Of a DNA stretch of 64,000 nucleotides, positions 3,363 to 17,823 are shown piece after piece. Numbering within the stretch: the stretch's first letter is position 1; the number at the start of each line of letters is the position of its first letter. Made by a program: the position numbers and the translations under genes. The DNA lies in sequence record OR258281.1. One strand, given 5' to 3'. The notes below the pieces were generated by a model. That model ran no database searches. It was not told the origin of the DNA and saw only the letters and a list, made by a program, of their open reading frames with translations.

Positions 3363-3557
3363 ATGGTTATGGAATTGATTGGCCTGTACTTCCTGATTGG
3401 GTTCTTTGTTAGTCCAGTAGTGTACCGTATGGATCAGGTATGTGCTTCTGATTGCGGCCCGTTAACTGATATGTTGATTGCGGTTATTGTCTGGCCTTTC
3501 TTTTGGGTACTGGTAGTATATAACGTACTGACGGACAAGCCTGATAATTCATTCTAA
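3363..3557 (+). CDS. Small membrane protein
   Basis: Two hydrophobic segments. Confidence 0.65.
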   Translation: MVMELIGLYFLIGFFVSPVVYRMDQVCASDCGPLTDMLIAVIVWPFFWVLVVYNVLTDKPDNSF

Positions 3558-3832
3558 TTAGTACTTGAGGCGTTTTCTGATATGGTATTGTTTCAGTACT
3601 ATATCGGAAGACGCCTTTTATTGTTATTGCGAATGCTTCTCATTTACACTTATAGACACATATACACGCCCCTCGGGGACAGGTTTAATATAGCATTCTG
3701 AAGTACTTAACGCAAGGAAAAGAAATAGTATTTTAATTAGTATTAGTACTTAAAAAGTACTTAAAAAGTACTTGCAAAGTATTAGGTACTATAGTACTAT
3801 TATTACATCGAAACGAACGAGGGGATAGAGAA

Positions 3833-4105
3833 ATGTGGCAGATTATTAAAGTACAGGGTACAGTAGGTAAAGCGGTAAACATGGCGGTTCACAGTACTGA
3901 TAAATTACTTAATCATGTAATCCTTCAGAATCATCTTTCAAAGGATTTTGGTAATTTTGTAACTATCGAGTACTTAGAAACAGTTGAAGTACCAGATTTT
4001 AAACTTAACCACAAGGTTGAGCGTGTAATTGCTTTGGATGATATTAAAGCAAGATTTGTAGAAGATACTACTTCATTTGAAGATGATAATAGCGAAGGTA
4101 ATTAA
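3833..4105 (+). CDS. Hypothetical early protein
   Basis: Own promoter and RBS. Confidence 0.75.
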   Translation: MWQIIKVQGTVGKAVNMAVHSTDKLLNHVILQNHLSKDFGNFVTIEYLETVEVPDFKLNHKVERVIALDDIKARFVEDTTSFEDDNSEGN

Positions 4106-4187: not shown

Positions 4188-4472
4188 ATGACAAATACTA
4201 CTGAAAACCGTAAATTCTACGTGTTGAAAATCAGCGAAAATATTGGTGAGTACGAAGCCAATTCTAAAATACTGGTACAAGTGAAGCCGGATGATCTGGA
4301 TCAATACGTTGAAGATCTTCTGAAAGATTCATGGCGTGGTGAAGCCGACTATAACGAAGAAGATCAAGTTTTTGAAAATGGCGAAGTTTCCTGGTACTTA
4401 ACTGAAGCGATTGAAGTAAAAGACGATGTAGCACAGTACTTAATCCAAATGAATATCTTAAATCTGTTGTAA
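4188..4472 (+). CDS. Hypothetical acidic early protein
   Basis: Cassette promoter and RBS; start corrected. Confidence 0.8.
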   Translation: MTNTTENRKFYVLKISENIGEYEANSKILVQVKPDDLDQYVEDLLKDSWRGEADYNEEDQVFENGEVSWYLTEAIEVKDDVAQYLIQMNILNLL

Positions 4473-4554
4473 GTACTAAGTACTATTAAAAGTATCTTGC
4501 TTAATTAAGTAGGGTACTTTATAATGGTACTTATACAAACAAGGGGATAGAGAA

Positions 4555-4746
4555 ATGACCATTCATTTAATTGCTGTTATTGATTCTAATGGTGCTGGTG
4601 CTCTGGTAACGTTTGAGTCTTCTTCAAGTGATTATGAGGAAGTACAGGAACAATTAGAAAACTGGTTATCAGATGAAGGATATGATAGTACTTATATCAT
4701 CATTGATGATATTCAAAGCTCTAAGCGGGTAGTCAACGGTTTATAA
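4555..4746 (+). CDS. Hypothetical acidic early protein
   Basis: Cassette promoter and RBS. Confidence 0.8.
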   Translation: MTIHLIAVIDSNGAGALVTFESSSSDYEEVQEQLENWLSDEGYDSTYIIIDDIQSSKRVVNGL

Positions 4747-6811: not shown

Positions 6812-7203
6812 GGAAGCCATTGGCTTCCTTTTTTTGTTTGTATTTTATGGGTTTAGTACAAGTACTAATATTTCTCTAAAAAGATGCAAAAAGTACTTGC
6901 ACTAATTTTTCCAGTACTGTAGTATTAACTCCATCGAAGGGCGAGACGGAAACGAATCAAACTAAGATGAAGTTCAAAGGGTTCTGAAAGATGCCTTCTT
7001 ACAAAGACTGCAACTGATTCTCCTTTAGACTTCCTGATGATTGAATACTAAAAATTCAGTCCTTCAGAAAAAGATTTAAAAAGATTTAAAAAGTACTTGC
7101 AGAGTTAGTCGAAACGATGTAAAGTACTATTCAAGCAGTAAGAAACACCAAAAAACAAAAAAACCTTTATACACAAAATACACTGAAAATTGAGGATTAA
7201 AAT

Positions 7204-7950
7204 ATGACAACTTCTACTAAAGCAAACAACAAACCTTCTTCTAAAGCTGGCAACACTAACAAAACGCCTGATAACAACCTGGCGAAAAACACCAACGCGA
7301 AAACCGCTGGTGCGAACAAAGAAGGTACTGAAACCAGCACTGATACCGCTGAAGCTACTCCAGCCGCTGAAGAAGGTTCAAACGCTGAAGGTACTGATAC
7401 CCCGGCGACTGAAGAACAGAAAGCCCAGGCTAAACGTGTAACTCTGATGAGTGCACTGGAAAGCGGCGATGCTCTGGCGGTGGCTGAAGTACTGATTAAA
7501 CAGGGCCGCACTCAGGAGCAGATCGCTTCCTTCGCTGAAACTTTCGGTCAGGCTACTAAATCCTTCGCTGAAGTAGTTGCTAAACAGGAAGCAGAAGCAA
7601 AACAGCGTGCTGCTGAGAAAGAGAAAGCGGATCGTGAACTGGAAGAAGAACGCCAGAAAGCACAGGAAATCGTTGAAGCTGGTAAAAAGGCCGCGATTGA
7701 AGAAATGATTAAAAAGCTGGAAAGTACTGGTATCAAACCAGAAATGGCGGTACAGATTGCAAACAGTACTTTCGGTGGCGGTGCACGTTCAGGCGGTGCA
7801 GCACCAAAAGCAACAGTCCGTGTTAAGTACAAAGATGATCTGTACACTGTTAAAGTAACTGGTAACGACAAAGAAGCAATTAAGAAAATGATTGCTGAAT
7901 CAGGTCTGAGCCGTGCTGACTTCATCAAACAGTACCAGATTTCTGAATAA
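7204..7950 (+). CDS. H-NS-like protein with a low-complexity N-terminal extension
   Basis: Coiled coil, then EEMIKKLESTGIKPE and C-terminal VTGNDKEAIKKMIAESGLSRADFI, resembling H-NS EMLIADGIDPNE and [25 protein letters not shown]. Confidence 0.5.
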   Translation: MTTSTKANNKPSSKAGNTNKTPDNNLAKNTNAKTAGANKEGTETSTDTAEATPAAEEGSNAEGTDTPATEEQKAQAKRVTLMSALESGDALAVAEVLIKQGRTQEQIASFAETFGQATKSFAEVVAKQEAEAKQRAAEKEKADRELEEERQKAQEIVEAGKKAAIEEMIKKLESTGIKPEMAVQIANSTFGGGARSGGAAPKATVRVKYKDDLYTVKVTGNDKEAIKKMIAESGLSRADFIKQYQISE

Positions 7951-8046
7951 GATGTAACGGGGCGGTATACGCCCCATTCTAAGAGGCTTTTGCAAAGTAC
8001 TAGTACAGTTGGATAGTGTTTTATAAAAGTCTCTTAAAATGAACTA

Positions 8047-8075
8047 CAGGACACTCAATTGAGTGTCTTTTTTTT
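8047..8075 (+). terminator. Intrinsic terminator
   Basis: GGACACTC-AATT-GAGTGTCT followed by a T-run. Confidence 0.8.
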
Positions 8076-8169
8076 GTTTGTATCTTTTGATTAAGTACTA
8101 AAATAAATTTGCACTATATCTAGGAATGTATTATAATTACCTTAAGTTAATCAATGGGGGATTACGAAC

Positions 8170-8361
8170 ATGTTCTATCGGGTAGAAGAATACAACAACG
8201 ATGGTTATCTTGACTTGCTGGTTATCACTGAGAAGTCAAAAGCTGAAGTACAGGCAAAGTACCCGGAGGCAAAAGTTAAACTTGTTTCCGACGCGGATAG
8301 CATTGAAACCTGGGACATTGCTGATATGGAAAGCATTACTAAGATTGAGGTACTTAAATGA
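8170..8361 (+). CDS. Hypothetical early protein
   Basis: Promoter and GGGGAT RBS. Confidence 0.75.
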   Translation: MFYRVEEYNNDGYLDLLVITEKSKAEVQAKYPEAKVKLVSDADSIETWDIADMESITKIEVLK

Positions 8362-8753
8362 ATACTGTATTTCAAAGTTTAATGCGTGATGTACTGGCGA
8401 CTTTCGCTGACGTTGTAGTACTGATGCCGCCAAAATCAAGCCTGGATGCGGAGATCGCAATGATCCGCAAACGGATGAAAGAAAGCAAGTTACAGAAGCG
8501 GGAAGCCTTTGCAATTGATGAACTTATCAAAGCACACTATAAATTTACAGGTACATTACATTTAGTACTTGCATATAAGTTTAATGGTGAGCTATACTAT
8601 TCAGGAAATAAGCCGGTTCCATTTATGAAAAGTACTAAGGTACTTCATGATATGAATATGCTTACTCAAACTGACTGGAATAACCTGGAGCGTTATGTAG
8701 TATGGATCAAGTCCGGGCAGATTTACGATAAGGTACATTCAATTAATCACTGA
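8358..8753 (+). CDS. Hypothetical protein
   Basis: ATGA overlap. Confidence 0.75.
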   Translation: MNTVFQSLMRDVLATFADVVVLMPPKSSLDAEIAMIRKRMKESKLQKREAFAIDELIKAHYKFTGTLHLVLAYKFNGELYYSGNKPVPFMKSTKVLHDMNMLTQTDWNNLERYVVWIKSGQIYDKVHSINH

Positions 8754-8829
8754 GTACTATTAAAAGCGTCTTGCTTTATATTGTAGGATGCTTTATAATG
8801 TACTTAATGAATCGACGGGGATAGAGAAA

Positions 8830-9147
8830 ATGTTAGGTACTCCACACAACAAAGCATACAAATACAACTACTTTTTCATTGATAGCTTAGGCGTTCAGTG
8901 CCGGGTTGAAAAGGTTATCTGTTTAGTACCAGGTGCACCAAATATTCATAAGATGATCATTCAGTGGAACCATGCCGCTAAAAAAGGCAACTACTACGAA
9001 TTGATCGGGGAAATACCAGTTAAGGAAGCACTTTTACTGAAAAGTACATCTGGAAGTACTATCCGCGATAACTGGAAATTCCTGGGTAATTTACTGTTTC
9101 ACAGTATCGAACTTTCTTTTAATAAAGTACTACCTAAACTTGCATAA
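8830..9147 (+). CDS. Hypothetical early protein
   Basis: Variant cassette promoter; start corrected. Confidence 0.75.
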   Translation: MLGTPHNKAYKYNYFFIDSLGVQCRVEKVICLVPGAPNIHKMIIQWNHAAKKGNYYELIGEIPVKEALLLKSTSGSTIRDNWKFLGNLLFHSIELSFNKVLPKLA

Positions 9148-9158
9148 GGTAATATATA

Positions 9159-9380
9159 ATGTTAAACTTATCTTGTGGTGCAAGAGTTAAATTTTCCGGT
9201 ACTTTACCTGGCGGATATGAAATTGAAGGTACTGGAGTTGTAAAGACACAAATCGATGATCATTGTAGTGTTTACATCGGTACTATTAAAGTAAATGGCG
9301 AGGATGTTACTAAAAAGTACAGTGCGGAAATTTCCTACCTTATACCCATAGGAATAATTAAGTCAAGTACCCCGGCATAG
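9159..9380 (+). CDS. Hypothetical protein
   Basis: ORF; terminator follows. Confidence 0.7.
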   Translation: MLNLSCGARVKFSGTLPGGYEIEGTGVVKTQIDDHCSVYIGTIKVNGEDVTKKYSAEISYLIPIGIIKSSTPA

Positions 9381-9576
9381 GCTGGGGATTTTTTTTGAGT
9401 ACTTTTAAATTCTCAGGACAGATCTACCCGCCCCTCGGGGTCAGTATTAGAATAGCAAACCAGGTACTTAAAAGCAAGGAAAAGAAATAGTTTATTTCGG
9501 TACTTAATACTATATAGTACTTGCAATGTAATTAGTATTGTAGTACTATTATTGTATTGAAACGAAGGGGGATTGT

Positions 9577-9798
9577 ATGCCGAAGTCATTTAACGCGAGA
9601 AGTAAAGAAAGTACTGGATTACTCTTTATTGATTCAGAAGTATATAACAAAGAGTTTCCTGCTGGTACTACATTAGCAGAGATCAAATCTGCGATGGATA
9701 TTAAAGGGGAAGTATTCATTAAATCCCGGTATGCTAATTCCGTAGAGTACAAATTGAAAGGAAGTACTTACACTTTCACTGTAAAGTTTTTATTCTGA
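9577..9798 (+). CDS. Hypothetical early protein
   Basis: Promoter and RBS. Confidence 0.75.
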   Translation: MPKSFNARSKESTGLLFIDSEVYNKEFPAGTTLAEIKSAMDIKGEVFIKSRYANSVEYKLKGSTYTFTVKFLF

Positions 9799-9874
9799 AT
9801 ACATTAAAAGTACCTTGCAAATAGTATCAGGGTACTTTATAATGTACTTACAGTAAACAAAGGGGATAGAGAAA

Positions 9875-10060
9875 ATGGCTAAATGTACTATTTGTGGTAA
9901 AGAGATTGCACTGAATCCAAGTGCTAAAGAACGTGCGGAAAAGTTCGGTGGAAAGCCGTCTGATTACACTAAGCTGTTTACTACTCACGCGGCATGTTCA
10001 TTACAGAAGCGTTCAGAAGAAAGTACTGAACTTATGCGTAAGCTGGCTGGTGGACAATGA
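9875..10060 (+). CDS. Small protein with CxxC and HxxC motifs (possible Zn binding)
   Basis: MAKCTICGK...THAAC; cassette promoter. Confidence 0.75.
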   Translation: MAKCTICGKEIALNPSAKERAEKFGGKPSDYTKLFTTHAACSLQKRSEESTELMRKLAGGQ

Positions 10061-10242
10061 AACTTTCAAAGCTGAAAGCACTGGTACAGAAACTTGAAGA
10101 TGATAGTACCGGTACTGATCCAGAAGTTTTCTTGTACTCAATTCATGCTCAAGATATACAGTTTGACATCTTAGAAAATGCTGAAAGATTGAGTGCACGA
10201 CAAATGTGTTTTGATGGTAGTTATCACTTACCTATTGAATAA
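10057..10242 (+). CDS. Hypothetical protein, paralog of 10605-10805
   Basis: MKLSKLKALVQKLEDDSTGTD vs MKLSKLKEIVRQLEEESKGTD. Confidence 0.8.
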   Translation: MKLSKLKALVQKLEDDSTGTDPEVFLYSIHAQDIQFDILENAERLSARQMCFDGSYHLPIE

Positions 10243-10313
10243 GTTTATTAAAAGTACTTGCAATATATCAGCGAGTACTTTATAATGTACTTATTGAAAC
10301 GGGGGAATAGATT

Positions 10314-10505
10314 ATGAAACGTTATATCAATGCAAAATCAGGATCAGTAACTGAAACAATCGAAGAACTGGATAGTAAAGATTTCGCAAGTATGAATGAT
10401 TTTAAAAATACCTTAGCTACTCGGGTCGGTTCGCATCGAATGACATTAAAATCATTTAAAGTATATGTTTCTTCTCGTTGTGATAAATCATGGACGGGCA
10501 ACTAA
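10314..10505 (+). CDS. Hypothetical early protein
   Basis: Cassette promoter and RBS. Confidence 0.75.
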   Translation: MKRYINAKSGSVTETIEELDSKDFASMNDFKNTLATRVGSHRMTLKSFKVYVSSRCDKSWTGN

Positions 10506-10604
10506 TCACAAAACGGCGATATTACTGTTTAAGTACAATAAAAGTACTTGTATTAATTAAACGAGTACTTTATAATGTACTTATACCAACAAGGGGATAG
10601 AGAA

Positions 10605-10805
10605 ATGAAACTGTCAAAACTGAAAGAAATTGTACGTCAACTGGAAGAAGAAAGTAAAGGTACTGACGTAGATATTGTACTTTACGATATTGGTATTCCA
10701 GGCCGTGCTCCAAACTATGAGCTTGCATTTCAAAACAACGAATATCCATTAAGTGTTATGCGTGTTGAAAACACGTTTGCACTGCCGCTGGTACTGGTAA
10801 AATAA
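10605..10805 (+). CDS. Hypothetical early protein, paralog of 10057-10242
   Basis: Cassette promoter; start corrected. Confidence 0.8.
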   Translation: MKLSKLKEIVRQLEEESKGTDVDIVLYDIGIPGRAPNYELAFQNNEYPLSVMRVENTFALPLVLVK

Positions 10806-10881
10806 TACATTAAAAGTACTTGCACTATATCAGCGAGTACTTTATAATGTACTTATACAAACAAATACAGGGAATTAAACT

Positions 10882-11094
10882 ATGGTCAGATTAAAGAAAG
10901 GTTCTTTAGTTGGAACCCTGAAAATAACACCACGCGAACATTATACAATGAATGGTTGTGATTGGCGTGATTGTTTAGCTCTTGTGGATGATTCAGGTAA
11001 TTGGCTTAATAGTACCTGGTTTCGTCCAAACGCACACAAAAAGGCATTGAGTTATTTTCTTGAAAATGGCTGGTCTGTAGAAAACGGGGATTAG
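10882..11094 (+). CDS. Hypothetical early protein
   Basis: Cassette promoter. Confidence 0.75.
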   Translation: MVRLKKGSLVGTLKITPREHYTMNGCDWRDCLALVDDSGNWLNSTWFRPNAHKKALSYFLENGWSVENGD

Positions 11095-11098
11095 TCAA

Positions 11099-11353
11099 AT
11101 GAAAGTAATTAAAATCAGTACTTACACGTATGTACCGGACGCGATCTTAAAGGCACTGTCACACATCCAAGAAGGCTGCCCGGACGTGCACCAAGTACAG
11201 TACGACGAAGACGGAAACTGGTTGTACATTAACCGGGATGGTACTGCAACGGATTTCGGGAAAAGTACTGTCAGTATCAATCAGGAAGTACTTGAGCAGG
11301 CGTCTGACGCGGCTTATTCAGTTGGCTATCCTGTAACGTTTGTACTTCCTTAA
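11099..11353 (+). CDS. Hypothetical protein
   Basis: GGGGAT RBS at the end of the upstream gene. Confidence 0.75.
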   Translation: MKVIKISTYTYVPDAILKALSHIQEGCPDVHQVQYDEDGNWLYINRDGTATDFGKSTVSINQEVLEQASDAAYSVGYPVTFVLP

Positions 11354-11428
11354 AGTACTATTAAAAGTATCTTGCAATATATTGTAGGGTACTTTATAAT
11401 GTACTTATACTAACAAGGGGATAGAGAA

Positions 11429-11686
11429 ATGAAAGTATCAGAACTGATTGCAGAATTACTGAAACAGGATCAAAATAAGGATGTAGTAGCGGATGTATGG
11501 TACGCGGATGATATTCGCGAAGCGGCTGAACATCTGGAAAAGCTGACGGATGAGCAATGTCAGAAAATCATTCAGTACTTAGAGCGTAATCCTAACTCTG
11601 AGTATGGCATCAACAACGAGCGTATTATTGATATTGTTGATAACCTGATTGAATCAGGTGAAATTGATTTCGACTACACCATTTAA
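11429..11686 (+). CDS. Hypothetical acidic early protein
   Basis: Cassette promoter and RBS. Confidence 0.8.
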   Translation: MKVSELIAELLKQDQNKDVVADVWYADDIREAAEHLEKLTDEQCQKIIQYLERNPNSEYGINNERIIDIVDNLIESGEIDFDYTI

Positions 11687-11758
11687 TTACATTAAAAGTA
11701 CCTTGCAATATATCTCAGGGTACTTTATAATGTACTTAAATCAACGGGGGATAGTACA

Positions 11759-12205
11759 ATGAGCATTCAAAAACGTTTTATCATGGTTGTAACTGCTGCC
11801 AATCTTCGCGGCCAGCCAATGAAGAAAGCAGAGATTGAAATTACTGAATCTCAAATGAGCAATCAGGATTTCATTCAGAACCTGTTAGATCAGTTAGGAT
11901 CACTGACTGATACTGAACTCACGTATGAGTTTCAGGAAAAAGAAATGAAGTACTTTAACGCCCATGTTAACGTTATCGAGTATGGTAACAAACATAAAGT
12001 ACTTAATACCCTTCGCTTTCTTGTGCAGGCATACGATGCACAAGAAGCCCAAACTCATGTTTATCTTGAGATGGAAAAGATCTTAGTCAAGCGTAATCAG
12101 GAAATTCATCACGTTGCCTATACCGCAATTGATTCTGATTTAGCGAATGATGTACTTGCAAATAATATCAGTACCTTATTCGATGAAACGGATTATTTAA
12201 TTTGA
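11759..12205 (+). CDS. Hypothetical early protein
   Basis: Cassette promoter and RBS. Confidence 0.8.
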   Translation: MSIQKRFIMVVTAANLRGQPMKKAEIEITESQMSNQDFIQNLLDQLGSLTDTELTYEFQEKEMKYFNAHVNVIEYGNKHKVLNTLRFLVQAYDAQEAQTHVYLEMEKILVKRNQEIHHVAYTAIDSDLANDVLANNISTLFDETDYLI

Positions 12206-12300
12206 CGTGGCACTAAAAACGTGCTAAAGTTAATTATACTAAAGTACTATACAAAAGAACGTGTAGTACTTGATAATTAATTTACTCTGGAAGTATAAAG

Positions 12301-12696
12301 ATGAAAGCAGCAATCTATCACTTAATCAAAGCGGATCATACCAAATACAATTCAGTACAGGATTATATCGACGCCTTTAATGAGGGCGATGATACCCTGT
12401 ATAAAAGTATTCATTTTCAAACCTTGAGTACTGATAAGCGTAGTACCGTAGAAAACGCCTGGAATCTTTACCAGGAACAACGGATCGCGGAGCTTAAGAG
12501 TATTGAAGCTGCTCAACGTGAAGAAGAACGCGAGTACTCTAAACCGTACCCTAGCATTACTGAAATACTTAACAAGATCAAGGAAAACCCTGAATTGATA
12601 CCACATTTCGTATCATTGCTTGAGCTTGATAGTACCGTGTATGAGTACCGGGATAATATTCGTAAAGCTATCTGGTACTATAAGAACAATCGTTAA
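12301..12696 (+). CDS. Hypothetical protein
   Basis: 131-aa ORF with an upstream promoter. Confidence 0.75.
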   Translation: MKAAIYHLIKADHTKYNSVQDYIDAFNEGDDTLYKSIHFQTLSTDKRSTVENAWNLYQEQRIAELKSIEAAQREEEREYSKPYPSITEILNKIKENPELIPHFVSLLELDSTVYEYRDNIRKAIWYYKNNR

Positions 12697-12745
12697 AAAG
12701 CAGGGATAGGCGGGATGTTCACCTATCCCTGAAATAACACAGCAA
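12695..12745 (-). ncRNA. Candidate sRNA of about 50 nt
   Basis: Minus-strand TTGACT-17-TAAGGT promoter (12778-12750) and terminator CAGGGATAGG...CCTATCCCTG-CTTTTT. Confidence 0.35.
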
Positions 12746-12825
12746 TTAAACCTTAGTCAGTACTTCAATATAAGTCAAGAACAAAAATGTCATTGACAGA
12801 CTAAGGTATTGTGCTATCTTTAAAT

Positions 12826-12901
12826 TGTATCAGAGAAGTTCATCCATGAGTAGACTCCTTTTTGGGGATAAGAACGCCATCAATCTTATCCCTGCTTTTT
12901 T
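12826..12901 (+). ncRNA. Candidate sRNA of about 75 nt
   Basis: TTGACA (12793) - 16 bp - TATCTT with an extended -10 TG; no ORF; terminator GGGATAAGA...TCTTATCCC-TGCTTTTTT. Confidence 0.45.
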
Positions 12902-13105
12902 GTAGTACTTGATAAATTTTACACATAACTACCCACCCCTCGGGGTCACTGTTACTATAGCACATAGTGCTAATTACGCAAGGAATTATGTTCAAAAAGT
13001 AGAACTAAAAACAAAGAAATATATTATTAAAATAGTACTTAATTCCCCTTGCAGTACTTAATAGTTTTTGATAATATAACTGTATTGAAGCAAGGGGATA
13101 TGAAA

Positions 13106-13333
13106 ATGAAAAACAAAGAGTTGATTGAACAAATCATAAGTCATTTGGATATGGGTAATCCATCCATCGCGGTTGAATTACTCTTTCGCAAACGCCGTAG
13201 TAAAACTTTTGAGTTAAGTGTACTTATTATTGACCTTACTCAAGAGTTGATTGCCAAAGGGCATTATCGTTCTTTGCAATCCATGAAAGATCGTTTAAAC
13301 TGGTACAAAGACAATAATGTTACTTGGGGATAA
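13106..13333 (+). CDS. Hypothetical early protein
   Basis: Promoter and RBS; start corrected. Confidence 0.75.
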   Translation: MKNKELIEQIISHLDMGNPSIAVELLFRKRRSKTFELSVLIIDLTQELIAKGHYRSLQSMKDRLNWYKDNNVTWG

Positions 13334-13336
13334 AAA

Positions 13337-13507
13337 ATGAGTCAATACAATATTCAGAAAGTGTGGGGCGGTTTGGGTAAGCGTGAGTTTGAAGTGCAAT
13401 ATCGCGGTCAGGTAATTGGTACTAAGAGTACTAAACACGAAGCCGAAACTTTGATCCACCAGCACAAAAAAGATTCAGATTCTTTTAAACAGAAAGTACC
13501 TGCTTAA
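13337..13507 (+). CDS. 56-aa hypothetical protein (not in the ORF track)
   Basis: MSQYNIQKVWGGLGKREFEVQYRGQVIG...; GGGGAT RBS. Confidence 0.7.
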   Translation: MSQYNIQKVWGGLGKREFEVQYRGQVIGTKSTKHEAETLIHQHKKDSDSFKQKVPA

Positions 13508-13585
13508 GTTTTTATTAAAAGTACCTTGCAAATAGTATCAGGGTACTTTATAATAAAAATTCATTTACGGAGTGGGGATAGATGA

Positions 13586-13879
13586 ATGTTATTTGCTCTT
13601 ATTGTTTACGTCAATGCTTCACGTAGTGCCATTGTTGGTACTAAAGAAGTTATAGACGAATGGTTTAAAGATCACGATGTATCGTGGTACGATTCAGTTA
13701 CTGTTAATAAGTTAGTACCTGAACATGTATACATGTTAAAGCCATTGAATCACCAGGCTTTAGATGCTCAGTTATTCCGTCAGTTCGGGCTTAATTATAG
13801 TACTGACTGGACGTGGATTAATGAGAATGCATTGCGTCATGATAAGTACGGTTTTATTGCTCAGATTCCAGTAGGTTAA
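13586..13879 (+). CDS. Hypothetical early protein
   Basis: Cassette promoter; terminator at about 13914-13946. Confidence 0.7.
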   Translation: MLFALIVYVNASRSAIVGTKEVIDEWFKDHDVSWYDSVTVNKLVPEHVYMLKPLNHQALDAQLFRQFGLNYSTDWTWINENALRHDKYGFIAQIPVG

Positions 13880-13998
13880 TGAACATCCCCTGTAATTGCT
13901 AATTTTAGCACTGCCCGTTATCACTTTGGTAACGGGCTTTTTTATTTGCATATTATTTGCTGGTACTATATAATGAGTACTCAATCTTAGGGGGATAT

Positions 13999-14454
13999 AT
14001 GAAAGTTTACCGCATCGAATTGAAGTACTCACTGTTAGACGAACAATCTAAGAAGTTTTATAACAGTACTAATCAGGGGCCAATGTGTAACATCTTAGGT
14101 TCATGGATTTACTTACTTAATGGTTATTCCCGGTTAAACCTTTGTACCAGTATTGATTATATGCCTGAACCAGAATCTGATGGCATTTCAGATTGTGGCG
14201 GCTGGCATTTTGGTTTTAAGGATCTTGAGCAATTCGAAATGTTCTTTAACGGTGATATTAATAATCTTGAGTGGTCAGGTTATACTATTGCTGTTTATGA
14301 AGTACCAGAAAAATCAGTACAATTAGGCGGTAAGCAATTATGTTTCATCATGCAGCATTCAGTACTGATTGAGTACTTACCATTGCGTAAGACTATGACC
14401 GATAACAGACGCGAGAAGTACGGTTATCCGAAAAAGACTATTGCAACTGTCTGA
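13999..14454 (+). CDS. Hypothetical early protein
   Basis: RBS; start corrected. Confidence 0.75.
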   Translation: MKVYRIELKYSLLDEQSKKFYNSTNQGPMCNILGSWIYLLNGYSRLNLCTSIDYMPEPESDGISDCGGWHFGFKDLEQFEMFFNGDINNLEWSGYTIAVYEVPEKSVQLGGKQLCFIMQHSVLIEYLPLRKTMTDNRREKYGYPKKTIATV

Positions 14455-14529
14455 TAATTGTGATCGTACCCCCAGGATAAAGATATTAAAAATAGTACTT
14501 GCATATCCTGGGGTACTTTGATAATATAA

Positions 14530-14705
14530 TTGCACTTAAGGACAATAGTCATTAGGTGCATGGTACTAATCAGTACCAATAACGTTTAGAGTAATTGCAT
14601 TGTACATGACGAAAGAACATCCTGCAAGGGGTGTATTTTGTGTGTAGTCCATTCTCCTGGTATGTTCTTTTAACGAATTACCCTTGCATACCAGGAGCTT
14701 TTTAT
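14530..14705 (+). ncRNA. Candidate structured RNA of about 170 nt
   Basis: Promoter TTGCAT near 14498; no ORF; 11-bp stem CTCCTGGTATG 14654-64 / CATACCAGGAG 14687-97 followed by a T-run. Confidence 0.35.
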
Positions 14706-14779
14706 GTTATTATTTTTATCGACCCCGAGGGGCGGATAGTTATATCTAAATTTTAGTACTATTACGGTACTGAAAAATC

Positions 14780-14808
14780 TGAAATGTTTTGTGTTTATGT
14801 TCTATACT
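14780..14808 (+). promoter_or_regulatory. Class-2 promoter TGAAAT-N12-TGTTCTATACT
   Basis: Same geometry at 41526, 45084 and 48604. Confidence 0.75.
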
Positions 14809-14822
14809 ACTGGTATAAAATT

Positions 14823-15375
14823 CTGAATGGTGTACCCGGTTAGTAGTGTTAAGTACTTAAGAGTTAGTACTTGATTGGTACAATACAATAATCCTGATCT
14901 TATCGAAAATGTAGATAGCAGATGAGCAGTCCATACAGTGCGATGTGCAAACGAGACCCGTGTAAATTACTCCAAGTTAATTCAGAGGACACGGCAATGC
15001 GGCACAATAAAGGTACTCAATAATACTGAGAAGTACCCTTGATAGACATATATGGTAAACACCATACCAAAGGTATAAGGGAGTTTACAGTACTAAAAAG
15101 GTTCTTTAGTGCTCTGGATGTATAATATAGATCCGTCCAGTTTTTGTCAAAGGATTTTTCCAGTACTGTAAACAGGTATTTGATTAGTTTGTGTTGATTA
15201 AGTACTTAGATACGTGATGAGCGTAGACCGTTGCAATAGAACACTAATAGGAAGAAACCGGGCAACCCGCTTCCGTCTGAATAAGAATTTAGTACACAAA
15301 ATGTTGATAGCACCAGCGTCAAGTTTCTTTCCCCCTTGTGGGGTATCGAAATGTATCAAAGAAACCGCGTCAAGT
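14823..15375 (+). ncRNA. Large structured ncRNA candidate, copy 1 (about 553 nt)
   Basis: Collinear homology to 48676-49262; 51-nt identical block at 14953-15003; compensatory changes in stems; no conserved ORF. Confidence 0.75.
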
Positions 15376-15594
15376 TATCATCATATAGTTGATTAAGTAC
15401 TTACAAGAGCGTAAGCGATTGGTGTACTTAATCACTAACGGTTTGTCAAAACCGTTTAGTACTAAAACCAGTACAAATACCAGTACTTAAGTACTACAAA
15501 AACTATTATTAAAAGTATTACAAATAGTACTTGTAGAACCAATACTATAAGTGTATAGTACTTACATCGAAACGAAATACAAGGAAGTAAAGAA

Positions 15595-15837
15595 ATGAGT
15601 TCAAGAATGAAGGTACTGAATAAAGTAGTACACGTATATAATGTTCCACAGAAATTCCTTGATAAATGCGTGGTACTGATTAAGCAGTACTTAGCAGGCG
15701 AATTATCAGGCAGGAAGTTAAACAACGGAAAATTTGAAGTACTATCGTTGGGTAGAGAATATCGTGTGCTGGTGGATGGTGATTCCTTTAGGGTTATGAA
15801 TCACAACCACTACAACAAATATATTGATGCAAGATAA
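15595..15837 (+). CDS. ParE/RelE-like toxin-fold small protein (orphan)
   Basis: KQYLAGELSGRKL...LSLGREYRVL...VMNHNHYN resembles minimal ParE-like proteins of plasmids and prophages. Confidence 0.45.
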   Translation: MSSRMKVLNKVVHVYNVPQKFLDKCVVLIKQYLAGELSGRKLNNGKFEVLSLGREYRVLVDGDSFRVMNHNHYNKYIDAR

Positions 15838-15907
15838 TCCTTGCATTACGATTCAGAAATCGATATAGTCTTAGTCAAGCAAACAACGAATATCCGTGGG
15901 GGATAAA

Positions 15908-16279
15908 ATGAAAACTGTAACTACTTACTTCGCAACTCGCACTCTGGCCCGTAACGCTGTTGAAGCACTGAATGGCAAATTCAAAGACTTTGGTACTACT
16001 GCTGCTAAAGGTGAACGTTGGGCCGTGATCCATGAAGTAGCTGAAACTGTAATGGAAGAACAAATCCAGGTACAGGAAAAAGCGGCTGGTGCAGGCATTG
16101 GCAAGTCTTATGTACCGGATGATGAAATCAAAGCACAGATCGCATTGCTGGCCCGTTCAGTACAAAACCATAACGGTACTGTCCGTGTTATTAATCGCCG
16201 CCGGATGAATCGTAGTCACGCGGTGAACCTTAAAGGCAAAACTATCCCGGTAACTACTTACCATCGTCCAGCCGCGTAA
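15908..16279 (+). CDS. Hypothetical early protein
   Basis: Promoter and GGGGGAT RBS; start corrected. Confidence 0.8.
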   Translation: MKTVTTYFATRTLARNAVEALNGKFKDFGTTAAKGERWAVIHEVAETVMEEQIQVQEKAAGAGIGKSYVPDDEIKAQIALLARSVQNHNGTVRVINRRRMNRSHAVNLKGKTIPVTTYHRPAA

Positions 16280-16313
16280 CACTTGTACTTGTAGTAGTAC
16301 TCTATAGTAAATA

Positions 16314-16709
16314 ATGAAAACCTTATTAACATTGGAGTACTACTACATGCCTATTTCATTTGATGATGAACATCTAAACTCGCAAGATCCACGTAAGAAC
16401 AATGATAACGCTAAGTACAATGGCGGGATCGCTGGCACGTCTAAGAAGTGGGATCAATACCACAAGACTAACCCAGGCACAAAGAACGGCTTATACAAAG
16501 CAAGTCGCTCAGTGGGTACAGGTCAGGCGGGGATAGATGCGATGCAGCCCGGTGAAGTCACCGATACATCTACAATGAGTCCTGAAGAGAAGTTTCGTTA
16601 CATGCAGGCTTTAGGTCTATTAGGCGATAAACCGGTACAGGCACAAGCACAGCAAGTACCAGCTAAGCCAGTAATGCAACGTAACCAGCCATTCCGTAGA
16701 GGCCGGTAA
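16314..16709 (+). CDS. Hypothetical protein, probably disordered (start may be 16347)
   Basis: ORF rich in Q/N/G/P. Confidence 0.65.
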   Translation: MKTLLTLEYYYMPISFDDEHLNSQDPRKNNDNAKYNGGIAGTSKKWDQYHKTNPGTKNGLYKASRSVGTGQAGIDAMQPGEVTDTSTMSPEEKFRYMQALGLLGDKPVQAQAQQVPAKPVMQRNQPFRRGR

Positions 16710-16868
16710 GCAGTTTTAACACAAATAGTACTGTACATGGGTACAGTACTTTTAATGTGTACCTGGCGTTTATCCTAATCACACAAAATGATCAAATAAA
16801 TCGTACTTTAAACTTGTACAAGTTTAGAGGTTCATGTATAGTTAATTCATCGACGGGAACAACGGTAA

Positions 16869-17105
16869 ATGAGTTCAGAGACGCAAATACTGGTTCTTAA
16901 CGGTCAGAAGTTCACGATGACTTCTGGTGCAAGACAGATTGATAACGTTGGCGAGGTACTTAATTATCTTTCTTCTGACGATATAAAGAAAGTCCGAAGG
17001 GAAGCTAATATAAGTAAGATCGCAGTACGGCGAAATCCGGTACTAACCCGATTACTAAGCTGTATCTTATTGAAAAGTAGTCAAATTTTGAATGATCGAA
17101 CTTGA
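16869..17105 (+). CDS. Hypothetical protein
   Basis: 78-aa ORF. Confidence 0.6.
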   Translation: MSSETQILVLNGQKFTMTSGARQIDNVGEVLNYLSSDDIKKVRREANISKIAVRRNPVLTRLLSCILLKSSQILNDRT

Positions 17106-17236
17106 GTACTTATTTGATAAAATAGTTTGAAATTTGGCTTGCAATTAAATATTCAGTGCTATACTATACATGCATCCGGTAAGTTAAATGCACTTAAGGA
17201 TGCACTAAAACTACTTTTAATTGTGAGGATTTAACT

Positions 17237-17767
17237 ATGAACGCGACTAATACCACTACTAACCATAGCCGACTGACTCTTGTAAGTACTCTGGAGCAGG
17301 GCAAGCCGTCTATCGTAGCAGAAGTATTATACAAACAGGGTCGCACCGTTGCTGAAGTTAAGCAATTTGATAAAACCCTACGTAAAGCTGTTAAGCTGGC
17401 GAAATCATTGTTTCGTGAAGATGAGAAACGCCGCAAAGAACAGGAAAAAGAACGTATTGCAGCAGAGAAAGCTAAACAGCAACAGGAACAACTGTTACAG
17501 AAAAATGCTTCTCAGGCTATCGAAGCGGCGAAAAATGTACTTCTGGAAACGTTGATCGCTGGTGGTATGAGTGAGAAACAAGCGAAAGAAGTAGTAGCCC
17601 AGGAATTTAGCCATGTTTACCCAATGGGTAAAGTACAGGTATCATTCCGTGGCAAAACCTTTACTACTTCACTTCGCGGAAAAGCGTCAGATGATCTGAA
17701 AGAAGCACTCAAAGCTACTAATATGAGTCGCAAAAGTTTCATCGAACATTTCCAGGTACACGCATAA
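17237..17767 (+). CDS. H-NS-like protein, paralog of 7204-7950
   Basis: LVSTLEQGKPSIVAEVLYKQGRT vs LMSALESGDALAVAEVLIKQGRT; ETLIAGGMSE; SLRGKASDDLKEALKATNMSRKSFI. Confidence 0.5.
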   Translation: MNATNTTTNHSRLTLVSTLEQGKPSIVAEVLYKQGRTVAEVKQFDKTLRKAVKLAKSLFREDEKRRKEQEKERIAAEKAKQQQEQLLQKNASQAIEAAKNVLLETLIAGGMSEKQAKEVVAQEFSHVYPMGKVQVSFRGKTFTTSLRGKASDDLKEALKATNMSRKSFIEHFQVHA

Positions 17768-17799
17768 GTACTGTATAGTGTTACAGTGCTGTATATAAA

Positions 17800-17823
17800 A
17801 GCGGGTTAATTAACCCGCTTTTC
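17800..17823 (+). terminator. Intrinsic terminator (possibly bidirectional)
   Basis: AAAGCGGGTT-AATT-AACCCGCTTTT. Confidence 0.75.

Follow-up and report, generated by a model that had tools for sequence, protein, structure and literature searches.

AT-rich foreign DNA is a target of H-NS-type silencers, which bind it and shut it down. Phages and plasmids are known to carry copies of such silencers, including EPV1 H-NS, actinophage Lsr2, CgpS, Sfh and Pmr (PMC3097231, PMC7074111), and three of these, EPV1 H-NS, Lsr2 and CgpS, are phage-borne full-length relatives of host silencers. EPV1 H-NS was placed among the early genes, is 47% identical to host H-NS and was proposed to silence horizontally acquired islands of the host (PMC3097231). 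Phage products directed against the host silencer have also been described: T7 gp5.5 is cited in PMC3097231 as an early phage protein against host H-NS, and LUZ24 Mip is an early phage product against a host H-NS-family protein (PMC8501957). H-NST acts through its oligomerisation part (PMC7074111). Within the DNA-binding domain, MvaT, which lacks the Q/RGR motif, inserts only Gly99-Asn100 of its loop KGGNH into the minor groove, with Asn100 superimposing on H-NS Arg114 and Arg80 before strand 1 completing an AT-pincer (Ding et al., PMC4466236), and in Ler the loop is VGR and one side chain only is inserted (PMC4466236). The DNA analysed here, a stretch of 64,000 nucleotides referred to as the window, comprises bases 1-64000 of the record of Xanthomonas phage XaC1 (OR258281.1, 348,967 bp), and window numbering is record numbering. 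Two of its genes, XaC1_16 and XaC1_39, are deposited as coding sequences, each annotated as a hypothetical protein, and by sequence comparison their products are remote homologs of H-NS.

A first-pass annotation of the window had proposed the open reading frames (ORFs) at 7204-7950 and 17237-17767 as paralogs sharing VAEVL.KQGRT. Both ORFs exist as given, and BLASTP aligned their products over 174 residues at 26% identity (E 8e-16) with VAEVL.KQGRT common to both, from which the two are judged to be real paralogs. Metagenomic homologs returned by a word-indexed search numbered ten for XaC1_39 (54-60% identity) and one for XaC1_16 (89%), and an exhaustive profile search at E <= 1e-3 returned 37 cluster representatives, nearly all of them full-length matches of 150-250 amino acids. 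A pattern scan of IMG/VR for the family gave no relatives. Family alignments were made first from 13 sequences and later from 41 members, and the family profile, run over the whole 349-kb XaC1 record, matched exactly two proteins, XaC1_16 and XaC1_39.

The 13-sequence family alignment, compared with Escherichia coli H-NS by hhalign, gave a single collinear alignment (P 1.5e-3), and the 41-sequence alignment gave P 3.7e-6 and a program probability of 87% over 78 columns, pairing family positions 102-180 with H-NS 58-135. For a broader comparison, an H-NS reference alignment was assembled from 32 genes picked by PF00816 from a sample of 401 genomes, as the relatives returned by word-indexed and contig searches with E. 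coli H-NS all had 82% identity or more, a range too narrow to build a profile. The score was 27.0 (P 1e-3) against all 33 H-NS sequences and 42.6 (P 2.2e-6) against the eight of gamma type (GQGR); once the 33-member profile was split in this way, the signal could be traced to the gamma-type branch alone. Column shuffling of the alignment (150 shuffles) gave scores of 10.9 +/- 1.8 with a maximum of 17.4, reversed alignments gave 11-12, and in a null of real proteins, consisting of 99 unrelated ORFs of the window, the median was 11.6 and no score exceeded 21.7. Of the eight gamma-type H-NS sequences, seven individually scored above 21.7, all in one register. In the reverse direction, a gamma-type H-NS profile run over 101 ORFs of the window placed XaC1_16 at rank 1 and XaC1_39 at rank 7. 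When the family was split into modules, the central helix-turn-helix matched H-NS 45-86 (P 7.2e-6) and the C-terminal domain matched H-NS 87-137 (P 1e-3); both modules match separately and in order, and both cross-comparisons were null. The score against gamma-type H-NS is well above its shuffled and real-protein nulls, which reach 17-22 at most.

The same relationship was recovered from whole genomes. A hidden Markov model (HMM) of the family, run in six frames over an entire Escherichia genome, had hns as its top and only significant match (E 1.4e-6, covering all 137 codons), and in two further genomes the gene carrying PF00816 was again the top match (E 1.8e-7 and 4e-3). No match was found in a beta-type genome or in an MvaT-bearing genome. 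In the HMMER alignment, the family consensus 'mlktLiaaGlslevA' stands opposite H-NS YREMLIADGIDPNELL, the basic linker of the family opposite TKAKRAQRPAK, 'vkGn' opposite G111-Q112-G113-R114, and 'elKdalaesGldReeFI' opposite the H-NS C-terminus; in the two phage proteins, LIAGGM/LESTGI faces H-NS LIADGIDPNE. Over its first ~70 positions the profile bears no relation to H-NS. As aligned, the homology to gamma-type H-NS runs from the middle of helix 3 to the C-terminus. Three resemblances to H-NS had been named in the first-pass annotation, and the alignment programs recover all of them in this register, with the nulls far below the observed scores. Five weak-scoring PF00816 proteins considered as MvaT-like intermediates were set aside, with scores of 9-24.

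Predicted structures were consistent with this assignment. In a full-length AlphaFold2 (AF2) model of XaC1_39 (predicted local distance difference test, pLDDT, 69), helices at residues 6-21 and 24-33 are followed by a long helix (38-108), a helix at 113-123, a hairpin at 132-145 and two short helices, and from helix 3 onward the order of elements is that of H-NS. A separate model of the XaC1_16 C-terminal domain, made with ten diverse sequences, reached a pLDDT of 81.7 and shows a hairpin, a six-residue loop with T-G-N-D and two helices. A Foldseek search with this domain against 350,542 chains of the PDB placed the C-terminal domain of Salmonella H-NS, 2l93, at rank 1 (template modelling (TM) scores 0.46/0.47, 24% identity), and in the same list MvaT 2mxe stood at rank 19 (TM 0.51/0.54), Ler 2lev at rank 29 and H-NS 1hnr at rank 45. 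VIA-align, which is independent of Foldseek, ranked a complex of the MvaT C-terminal domain with DNA first among 48,161 chains (2mxf_A, Z 3.4, root-mean-square deviation (rmsd) 2.4 A, 43 of 47 residues), with Z >= 2 reached by seven chains only; in a second look with VIA-align, 2mxe had Z 3.7 and the sole other chain at Z >= 2 was CopG (Z 2.1, rmsd 4.4 A). Four structures of one small superfamily are in the top 45 and the superfamily takes rank 1 in two aligners; this is no chance pattern. Foldseek with the full-length model gave no significant match, the long helix dominating, and 2l93 appeared only at rank 28, and an Atlas structural search with the whole protein had two H-NS clusters among its neighbours, with TM < 0.5. 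The C-terminal domain, as modelled, has the H-NS/MvaT DNA-binding fold: a confident model matches the DNA-binding domains of H-NS (Foldseek) and MvaT (VIA-align) at rank 1.

Several results weigh against reading the two proteins as H-NS relatives acting on DNA. The curated models PF00816 and PF22470 found no match in XaC1_16 or XaC1_39 (E <= 10), in the 41 members (E <= 1) or in the XaC1 record, and PF22055 (MvaT_DBD) found none in the XaC1 record at E 10. Neither single proteins nor profiles retrieved H-NS from Pfam, PHROG or the PDB sequences, where the matches were of a compositional, helical kind; the blank in the PDB search is probably because the H-NS entries there are fragments. Neither the 25 alpha/beta-type H-NS sequences (hhalign score 14.1) nor 20 MvaT proteins (14.3, P 0.18) gave a significant score, and the family HMM found no match in one gamma-type genome. 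The N-terminal part of the family gave no hhalign signal against H-NS 1-45, that is, no detectable counterpart of site 1. The host of XaC1 is a Xanthomonas; the similarity measured is to H-NS of the gamma/enterobacterial type, which agrees better with the hosts of most cultured relatives than with that of XaC1. Individual fold scores are weak (Foldseek E 0.55; Z < 4) because the domain has only ~45 residues. The linker of XaC1_39 is short and neutral, and the canonical Q/RGR is absent, XaC1_16 having KVTGND and XaC1_39 TSLRGKAS. Finally, several quite different biological roles are compatible with the same anatomy.

The loop itself had been described at first pass as a replacement of TWTGQGR by KVTGND or TSLRGK, and this holds in the alignments, where T219-G220-N221 of XaC1_16 and R147-G148-K149 of XaC1_39 each lie opposite Q112-G113-R114, TTSLRGKAS of the latter facing H-NS TWTGQGRTP. 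The loop glycine is invariant in 41 of 41 members, and the residue after it is Asn in 30, Lys in nine (the XaC1_39 clade) and Arg in two, with Lys or Arg often preceding the glycine. An Arg or Lys directly before strand 1 is found in 31 of the 41 members, with Thr at this place in XaC1_16, and helix 1 of the C-terminal domain has a near-invariant Lys. The cores of the C-terminal domains are basic (+3 in XaC1_16, +5 in XaC1_39), and many members have a K/R-rich, H-NS-like linker; that of XaC1_16 is Gly-rich. Given the precedent of Gly99-Asn100 in MvaT, XaC1_16, with T-G-N, would carry an MvaT-type half-hook, and the R-G-K of XaC1_39 is, from its sequence, something close to an R-G-R hook. A remodelled loop should not be equated with a disabled one. 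The view of the two proteins as H-NS-like paralogs with a remodelled DNA-binding loop is accordingly backed by profile searches, by profile-profile comparison with controls and by fold searches.

Set beside the described systems, the family shares with H-NS/StpA (PF22470 and PF00816) ~100 collinear residues that comprise a charged part of the long helix, the LIA.G helix-turn-helix, a linker that is basic in many members, a hairpin, the loop Gly, a helix with a conserved Lys, a Gly and a final F-[IL] helix, in the same order of secondary structure. It differs in that Q/RGR is replaced by [T/K/R/S]-G-N or [K/R]-G-K and the Pfam models are silent, and in having an extra conserved N-terminal domain, a spacer helix ~25 residues longer, no detectable site 1, and lytic jumbo phages as its carriers. 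MvaT/MvaU/Pmr (PF22055; 2mxe, 2mxf) come closest in structure to the C-terminal domain (Z 3.4-3.7, rmsd 2.4-2.5 A, 43 of 47 residues). The G-N in the loop that follows strand 2, with a basic residue often just ahead of strand 1, is a possible parallel to the Arg80/Gly99-Asn100 AT-pincer; profile similarity to them is not significant, however, and XaC1_39 has G-K instead of G-N. Ler (2lev) and H-NST are likewise H-NS relatives on mobile DNA, where they relieve silencing, Ler with an altered loop and a C-terminal domain in the top 30 fold matches, but these are recognisable H-NS homologs of pathogenicity islands and not phage early genes. EPV1 H-NS, Lsr2 and CgpS are close host copies found by BLAST, whereas the XaC1 family has diverged widely, with an N-terminal domain and a loop peculiar to it, and is conserved by vertical descent across a whole group of jumbo phages. 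To T7 gp5.5 and LUZ24 Mip, both small and unrelated in sequence to H-NS, there may be a functional analogy.

The most conserved block of the family is the N-terminal 55 residues (RLTLVS..G....VAEVL.KQGRT), for which an Atlas search with the N-terminal 60 residues gave no informative fold neighbour. Members of the XaC1_16 clade, not those of the XaC1_39 clade, carry an additional N-terminal tail of ~70 residues, which has no H-NS counterpart. One element of the first-pass annotation did not stand, namely an E/K-rich coiled coil. In XaC1_39, the segment is one long helix with 45% E+K+R and 15% hydrophobic residues, and the occupancy of heptad a/d positions in the charged helix is 0.20-0.30 (0.20 in XaC1_39), compared to 0.69 in H-NS helix 3, whose charged middle part is comparable but shorter. 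On these values a classical coiled coil was rejected, and given the low hydrophobic content and low a/d occupancy the segment looks like an exposed charged spacer helix.

The family extends through cultured Rak2-like phages. Using two divergent members as tblastn queries, it was found in Yersinia fHe-Yen9-03/04, Xanthomonas XbC2, Pectobacterium CBB and Cronobacter GAP32, and further in Serratia BF, six Erwinia pEa_SNUABM phages, Erwinia Kaldavass and Escherichia EJP2. In the four records examined, the family gene (g001 of fHe-Yen9-04, XbC2_1, CBB_3 and GAP32_005) is the first or nearly the first gene at the left end, and the family HMM confirmed all four (E 1e-50 to 1e-56); CBB_3 lies inside the annotated 22,456-bp terminal repeat of CBB. 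It is annotated as hypothetical in the XaC1, XbC2, CBB, GAP32 and fHe-Yen9-04 records, and bears the same label in the listed Serratia BF, Erwinia pEa_SNUABM, EJP2 and Kaldavass records. Two genes suspected from their size to be second paralogs, g003 of fHe-Yen9-04 and XbC2_3, proved to be unrelated. At the genome end, a leader of 1-1.8 kb, largely or wholly devoid of annotated genes, precedes the family gene in fHe-Yen9-04 (1-1082), XbC2 (1-1725) and CBB (188-1426). In a maximum-likelihood tree, calculated without two fragmentary rows, XaC1_16 and XaC1_39 fall in two separate well-supported clades, and since each clade holds orthologues from other phages, the duplication is old. In metagenomic contigs, the family genes lie in arrays of small same-strand ORFs without Pfam matches, and the long contigs are syntenic to XaC1. 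PHROG 20181 matched both XaC1 proteins weakly over most of their length (E 8e-6 and 1e-4) and presumably holds orthologues from the cultured Rak2-like phages; no function is attached to it, and the link to H-NS is not recorded there.

Phage XaC1 is a lytic phage of X. vesicatoria with 35.1% GC compared to ~65% in the host, and its genome ends in direct terminal repeats of the non-permuted T5 type, 32,031 bp long; the record holds the left copy only, and all 70 ORFs of the repeat were called hypothetical (PMC11273794). XaC1_16 and XaC1_39 both lie inside the repeat, and each packaged genome therefore has two copies of each. The GC content drops at ~32000, from 0.35-0.41 (1-32 kb) to 0.29-0.34 (32-64 kb), which matches the published repeat boundary of 32,031, and the two most GC-rich 2-kb windows of the repeat (0.41) are those containing XaC1_16 and XaC1_39. 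The 12-mer AAAGTACTTGCA, an AGTACT palindrome joined to a TTGCA -35 element, has 15 sites in the window compared to 0.63 expected, 13 of the 15 on the + strand; they span 2068-30767 (for example 3765, 6890, 7090, 10251, 10813, 20272, 24440 and 30756), with none in 32-64 kb, and the motif probably marks an early promoter class of the terminal repeat. Terminator-like hairpins are likewise abundant, with 21 between 6500 and 18500 compared to 6.8 expected, and with the promoter motif taken into account almost all small genes of the repeat resemble individual units, each with its promoter and terminator. The CBB authors described RpoD-like promoters on the repeat as possibly part of an early region (PMC5259590). 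XaC1 encodes sigma factors, and an RNA polymerase is not mentioned in the phage description (PMC11273794). These signals fit early transcription of small single units by host RNA polymerase, and the location in the repeat together with sigma-70-like promoters that carry a repeat-specific motif is consistent with XaC1_16 and XaC1_39 being early genes. Among public sequencing runs, none contained >15% of the sampled words, and a single RNA run stood at 4%.

Table 1 Positions in the window of XaC1_16 and XaC1_39, of their parts and of the signals that flank them
Feature	Position	Strand	Basis
Promoter-like element 1 upstream of XaC1_16: AAAGTACTTGCA motif (-35 TTGCAC), 17-nucleotide spacer, TAGTAT	6890..6925	+	Read from sequence, motif enrichment; function putative
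Promoter-like element 2 upstream of XaC1_16: AAAGTACTTGCA motif (-35 TTGCAG), 17-nucleotide spacer, TAAAGT	7090..7125	+	Read from sequence, motif enrichment; function putative
XaC1_16 coding sequence, 248 amino acids, H-NS-like paralog of 'T-G-N' type	7204..7950	+	ORF list, annotation, family HMM E 6e-55
XaC1_16 N-terminal low-complexity T/N/K/A/E/G tail, ~70 residues	7204..7413	+	Alignments
XaC1_16 end of long helix and short helix (H-NS site-2-like helix-turn-helix) with Gly-rich linker	7678..7794	+	Residue mapping; hhalign of module against H-NS 45-86, P 7.2e-6
XaC1_16 C-terminal domain, residues 198-248: beta-hairpin, loop, two helices	7795..7947	+	AF2 model, Foldseek, VIA-align
XaC1_16 loop T219-G220-N221, opposite H-NS Q112-G113-R114	7858..7866	+	Alignments
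Terminator-like hairpin with T-run downstream of XaC1_16	8048..8069	+	Hairpin scan
Promoter-like element upstream of XaC1_39: TTGCAA, 17-nucleotide spacer, TACTAT	17139..17167	+	Read from sequence; below scan threshold (8/12); function putative
XaC1_39 coding sequence, 176 amino acids, H-NS-like paralog of 'R-G-K' type	17237..17767	+	ORF list, annotation, family HMM E 9e-56, full-length AF2 model
XaC1_39 conserved N-terminal domain, residues 1-57 (RLTLVS..GKPSIVAEVLYKQGRT), without H-NS counterpart	17237..17407	+	Family conservation, hhalign
XaC1_39 E/K/R-rich middle of long helix, residues 58-92, spacer and not coiled coil	17408..17512	+	Composition, a/d occupancy
XaC1_39 H-NS site-2-like helix-turn-helix, residues 93-124, LLETLIAGGMSEKQAKEVV	17513..17608	+	hhalign, HMMER alignment
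XaC1_39 short linker and C-terminal domain, residues 125-176, core net charge +5	17609..17764	+	Model (E132-137, E140-145, H152-161, H165-172)
XaC1_39 loop R147-G148-K149, opposite H-NS Q112-G113-R114	17675..17683	+	hhalign, residue tally
Terminator-like hairpin downstream of XaC1_39	17797..17822	+	Hairpin scan

Between the two genes, the 80-amino-acid ORF XaC1_35 (15595-15837) has a ParE-like toxin domain (PF24732, E 1.8e-7, over the curated cut-off), and the gene syntenic to it in a 349-kb metagenomic relative (4372-4608) has the same match, weakly. The 1.1 kb between XaC1_34 and XaC1_35 (14455-15594) is without an annotated coding sequence. Metagenomic relatives have a Phage_T4_Y00F gene (PF26820) between the positions of both paralogs (9092-9532 in one and 3526-4017 in the 349-kb one); the XaC1 counterpart by synteny, XaC1_34 (13999-14454), had no match to Pfam at E 0.01.

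Taken as a whole, we consider it moderately probable that XaC1_16 and XaC1_39 are old paralogs of a phage-specific, highly divergent branch of H-NS, made early and acting on AT-rich DNA. As read from the sequences, they are probably early-made H-NS-type proteins that work on AT-rich DNA and interfere with host silencing; counter-silencing in particular is a tentative assignment, held with less than even confidence. The predicted architecture consists of a conserved non-H-NS N-terminal domain, a charged spacer helix, a helix-turn-helix related by descent to site 2, the central dimerisation element of gamma-type H-NS, a linker and a C-terminal domain of a hairpin and two helices. Transcription of both genes would begin very early, by host RNA polymerase from the sigma-70-like promoters of the terminal repeat, and the proteins would self-associate and bind AT-rich DNA in the minor groove. 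Interference might then occur by competitive coating, or by capping of host filaments through the site-2-like element, and the outcome would be counter-silencing like that of Ler or of truncated H-NS antagonists, such that early transcription of the phage would not be shut down. A more specific version is speculative and, in our judgement, somewhat unlikely: in most of the Rak2-like phages found, the gene that reaches the cell first, and in XaC1 two genes of the terminal repeat, would encode an H-NS captured and remade by the phage; this protein would poison or replace host silencer filaments on the incoming AT-rich genome, docking on host H-NS by site 2, with the G-N/G-K loop altering its hold on DNA.

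The same homology and fold evidence would also serve for proteins that are themselves silencers, made by the phage to coat and repress AT-rich, horizontally acquired islands of the host, which often hold defence systems, or to repress phage early promoters as a temporal switch. Both the oligomerisation-type helical part and the DNA-binding-type domain are kept, which is the argument used for EPV1 H-NS (PMC3097231), and the repeat has a high density of strong sigma-70-like promoters, which would have to be turned off. However, the altered loop and the missing site 1 speak against a plain copy of host H-NS function, and the phage genome is the most AT-rich DNA in the cell (35% compared to 65% GC, PMC11273794), so that a silencer without selectivity, if produced first, would act mainly against the phage itself. 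We regard this role as unlikely.

The strongest sequence signal of the split comparison lies in the site-2-like element (P 7.2e-6), and together with the loss of the canonical Q/RGR and the finding that truncated H-NS homologs, H-NST and others, relieve silencing (PMC7074111), this would suit pure dominant-negative antagonists without useful DNA binding, which would dock on host H-NS-type proteins through that element and cap their filaments while the C-terminal domain served another purpose. That domain, however, is among the best conserved parts of the family, with its invariant loop Gly, conserved Lys and basic surface, which is hard to explain without a ligand such as DNA, and G-N is a working minor-groove motif in MvaT (PMC4466236). 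A purely dominant-negative mode is therefore quite unlikely in our estimate. That the proteins have no connection with DNA, serving for instance as scaffold or adaptor in some other early process, with an H-NS likeness that arose by convergence of short helices and hairpins, would agree with the silence of the curated models, the low individual fold scores and an N-terminal domain without an assigned fold, but the HMMER genome search, hhalign with its nulls and two structure aligners converge on H-NS, and the aligned region is collinear over ~100 residues, which makes this very unlikely. Most improbable is a ribbon-helix-helix (RHH) module at the C-terminus of sequence-specific dimeric repressors unrelated to H-NS, a candidate raised by weak matches of XaC1_16 residues 213-243 to the NikA-like PF21983 (E 0.0012) and to RHH_1 PF01402 (E 0.004), by CopG as the only other chain at Z >= 2 (2.1) in the second-look alignment and by a G-x-S-R-x-x-F-I turn that in our own reading resembles the turn between RHH helices A and B, and rejected because both Pfam scores are below cut-off (17.5 bits for RHH_1 against 20.5 and 19.4 for NikA-like against 27) and arise in XaC1_16, not XaC1_39, and in two of the 41 members, because in each of the models an intramolecular hairpin is built from the two conserved strands, where RHH proteins pair one strand between subunits, because H-NS and MvaT rank above every RHH structure in both aligners, and because the homology to H-NS continues upstream through the linker and helix-turn-helix, which RHH leaves unexplained.

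What is new in the XaC1 family, compared to the phage-borne silencers already described, is that it has diverged past the curated models, has its own N-terminal domain and loop, and is a conserved terminal-repeat gene of a whole jumbo-phage lineage; a full-text literature search returned no paper containing both 'Rak2' and 'H-NS'. The analysis offers a name and a testable function for a gene so far called hypothetical, at the first-injected end of most of these genomes, and adds to the H-NS superfamily a third loop solution, [K/R/T]-G-N/K, which bears on the evolution of minor-groove readout. Natural loop variants of this kind would be useful for the study of filament capping, and the hns reporters already available in E. 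coli K-12 allow a direct test of orthologues from coliphage-like members. Several Rak2-like phages are considered for biocontrol of plant pathogens, where genes for host takeover are of practical value. If the more specific version with a captured H-NS is true, the G-N minor-groove solution of the MvaT type would have arisen independently inside the gamma-type H-NS lineage. These jumbo phages lie ~30 GC points below their hosts, and the question addressed is how such phages escape silencing; if that version is true, the family would represent a conserved, lineage-wide anti-silencing strategy of giant AT-rich phages without a nucleus-like shell.

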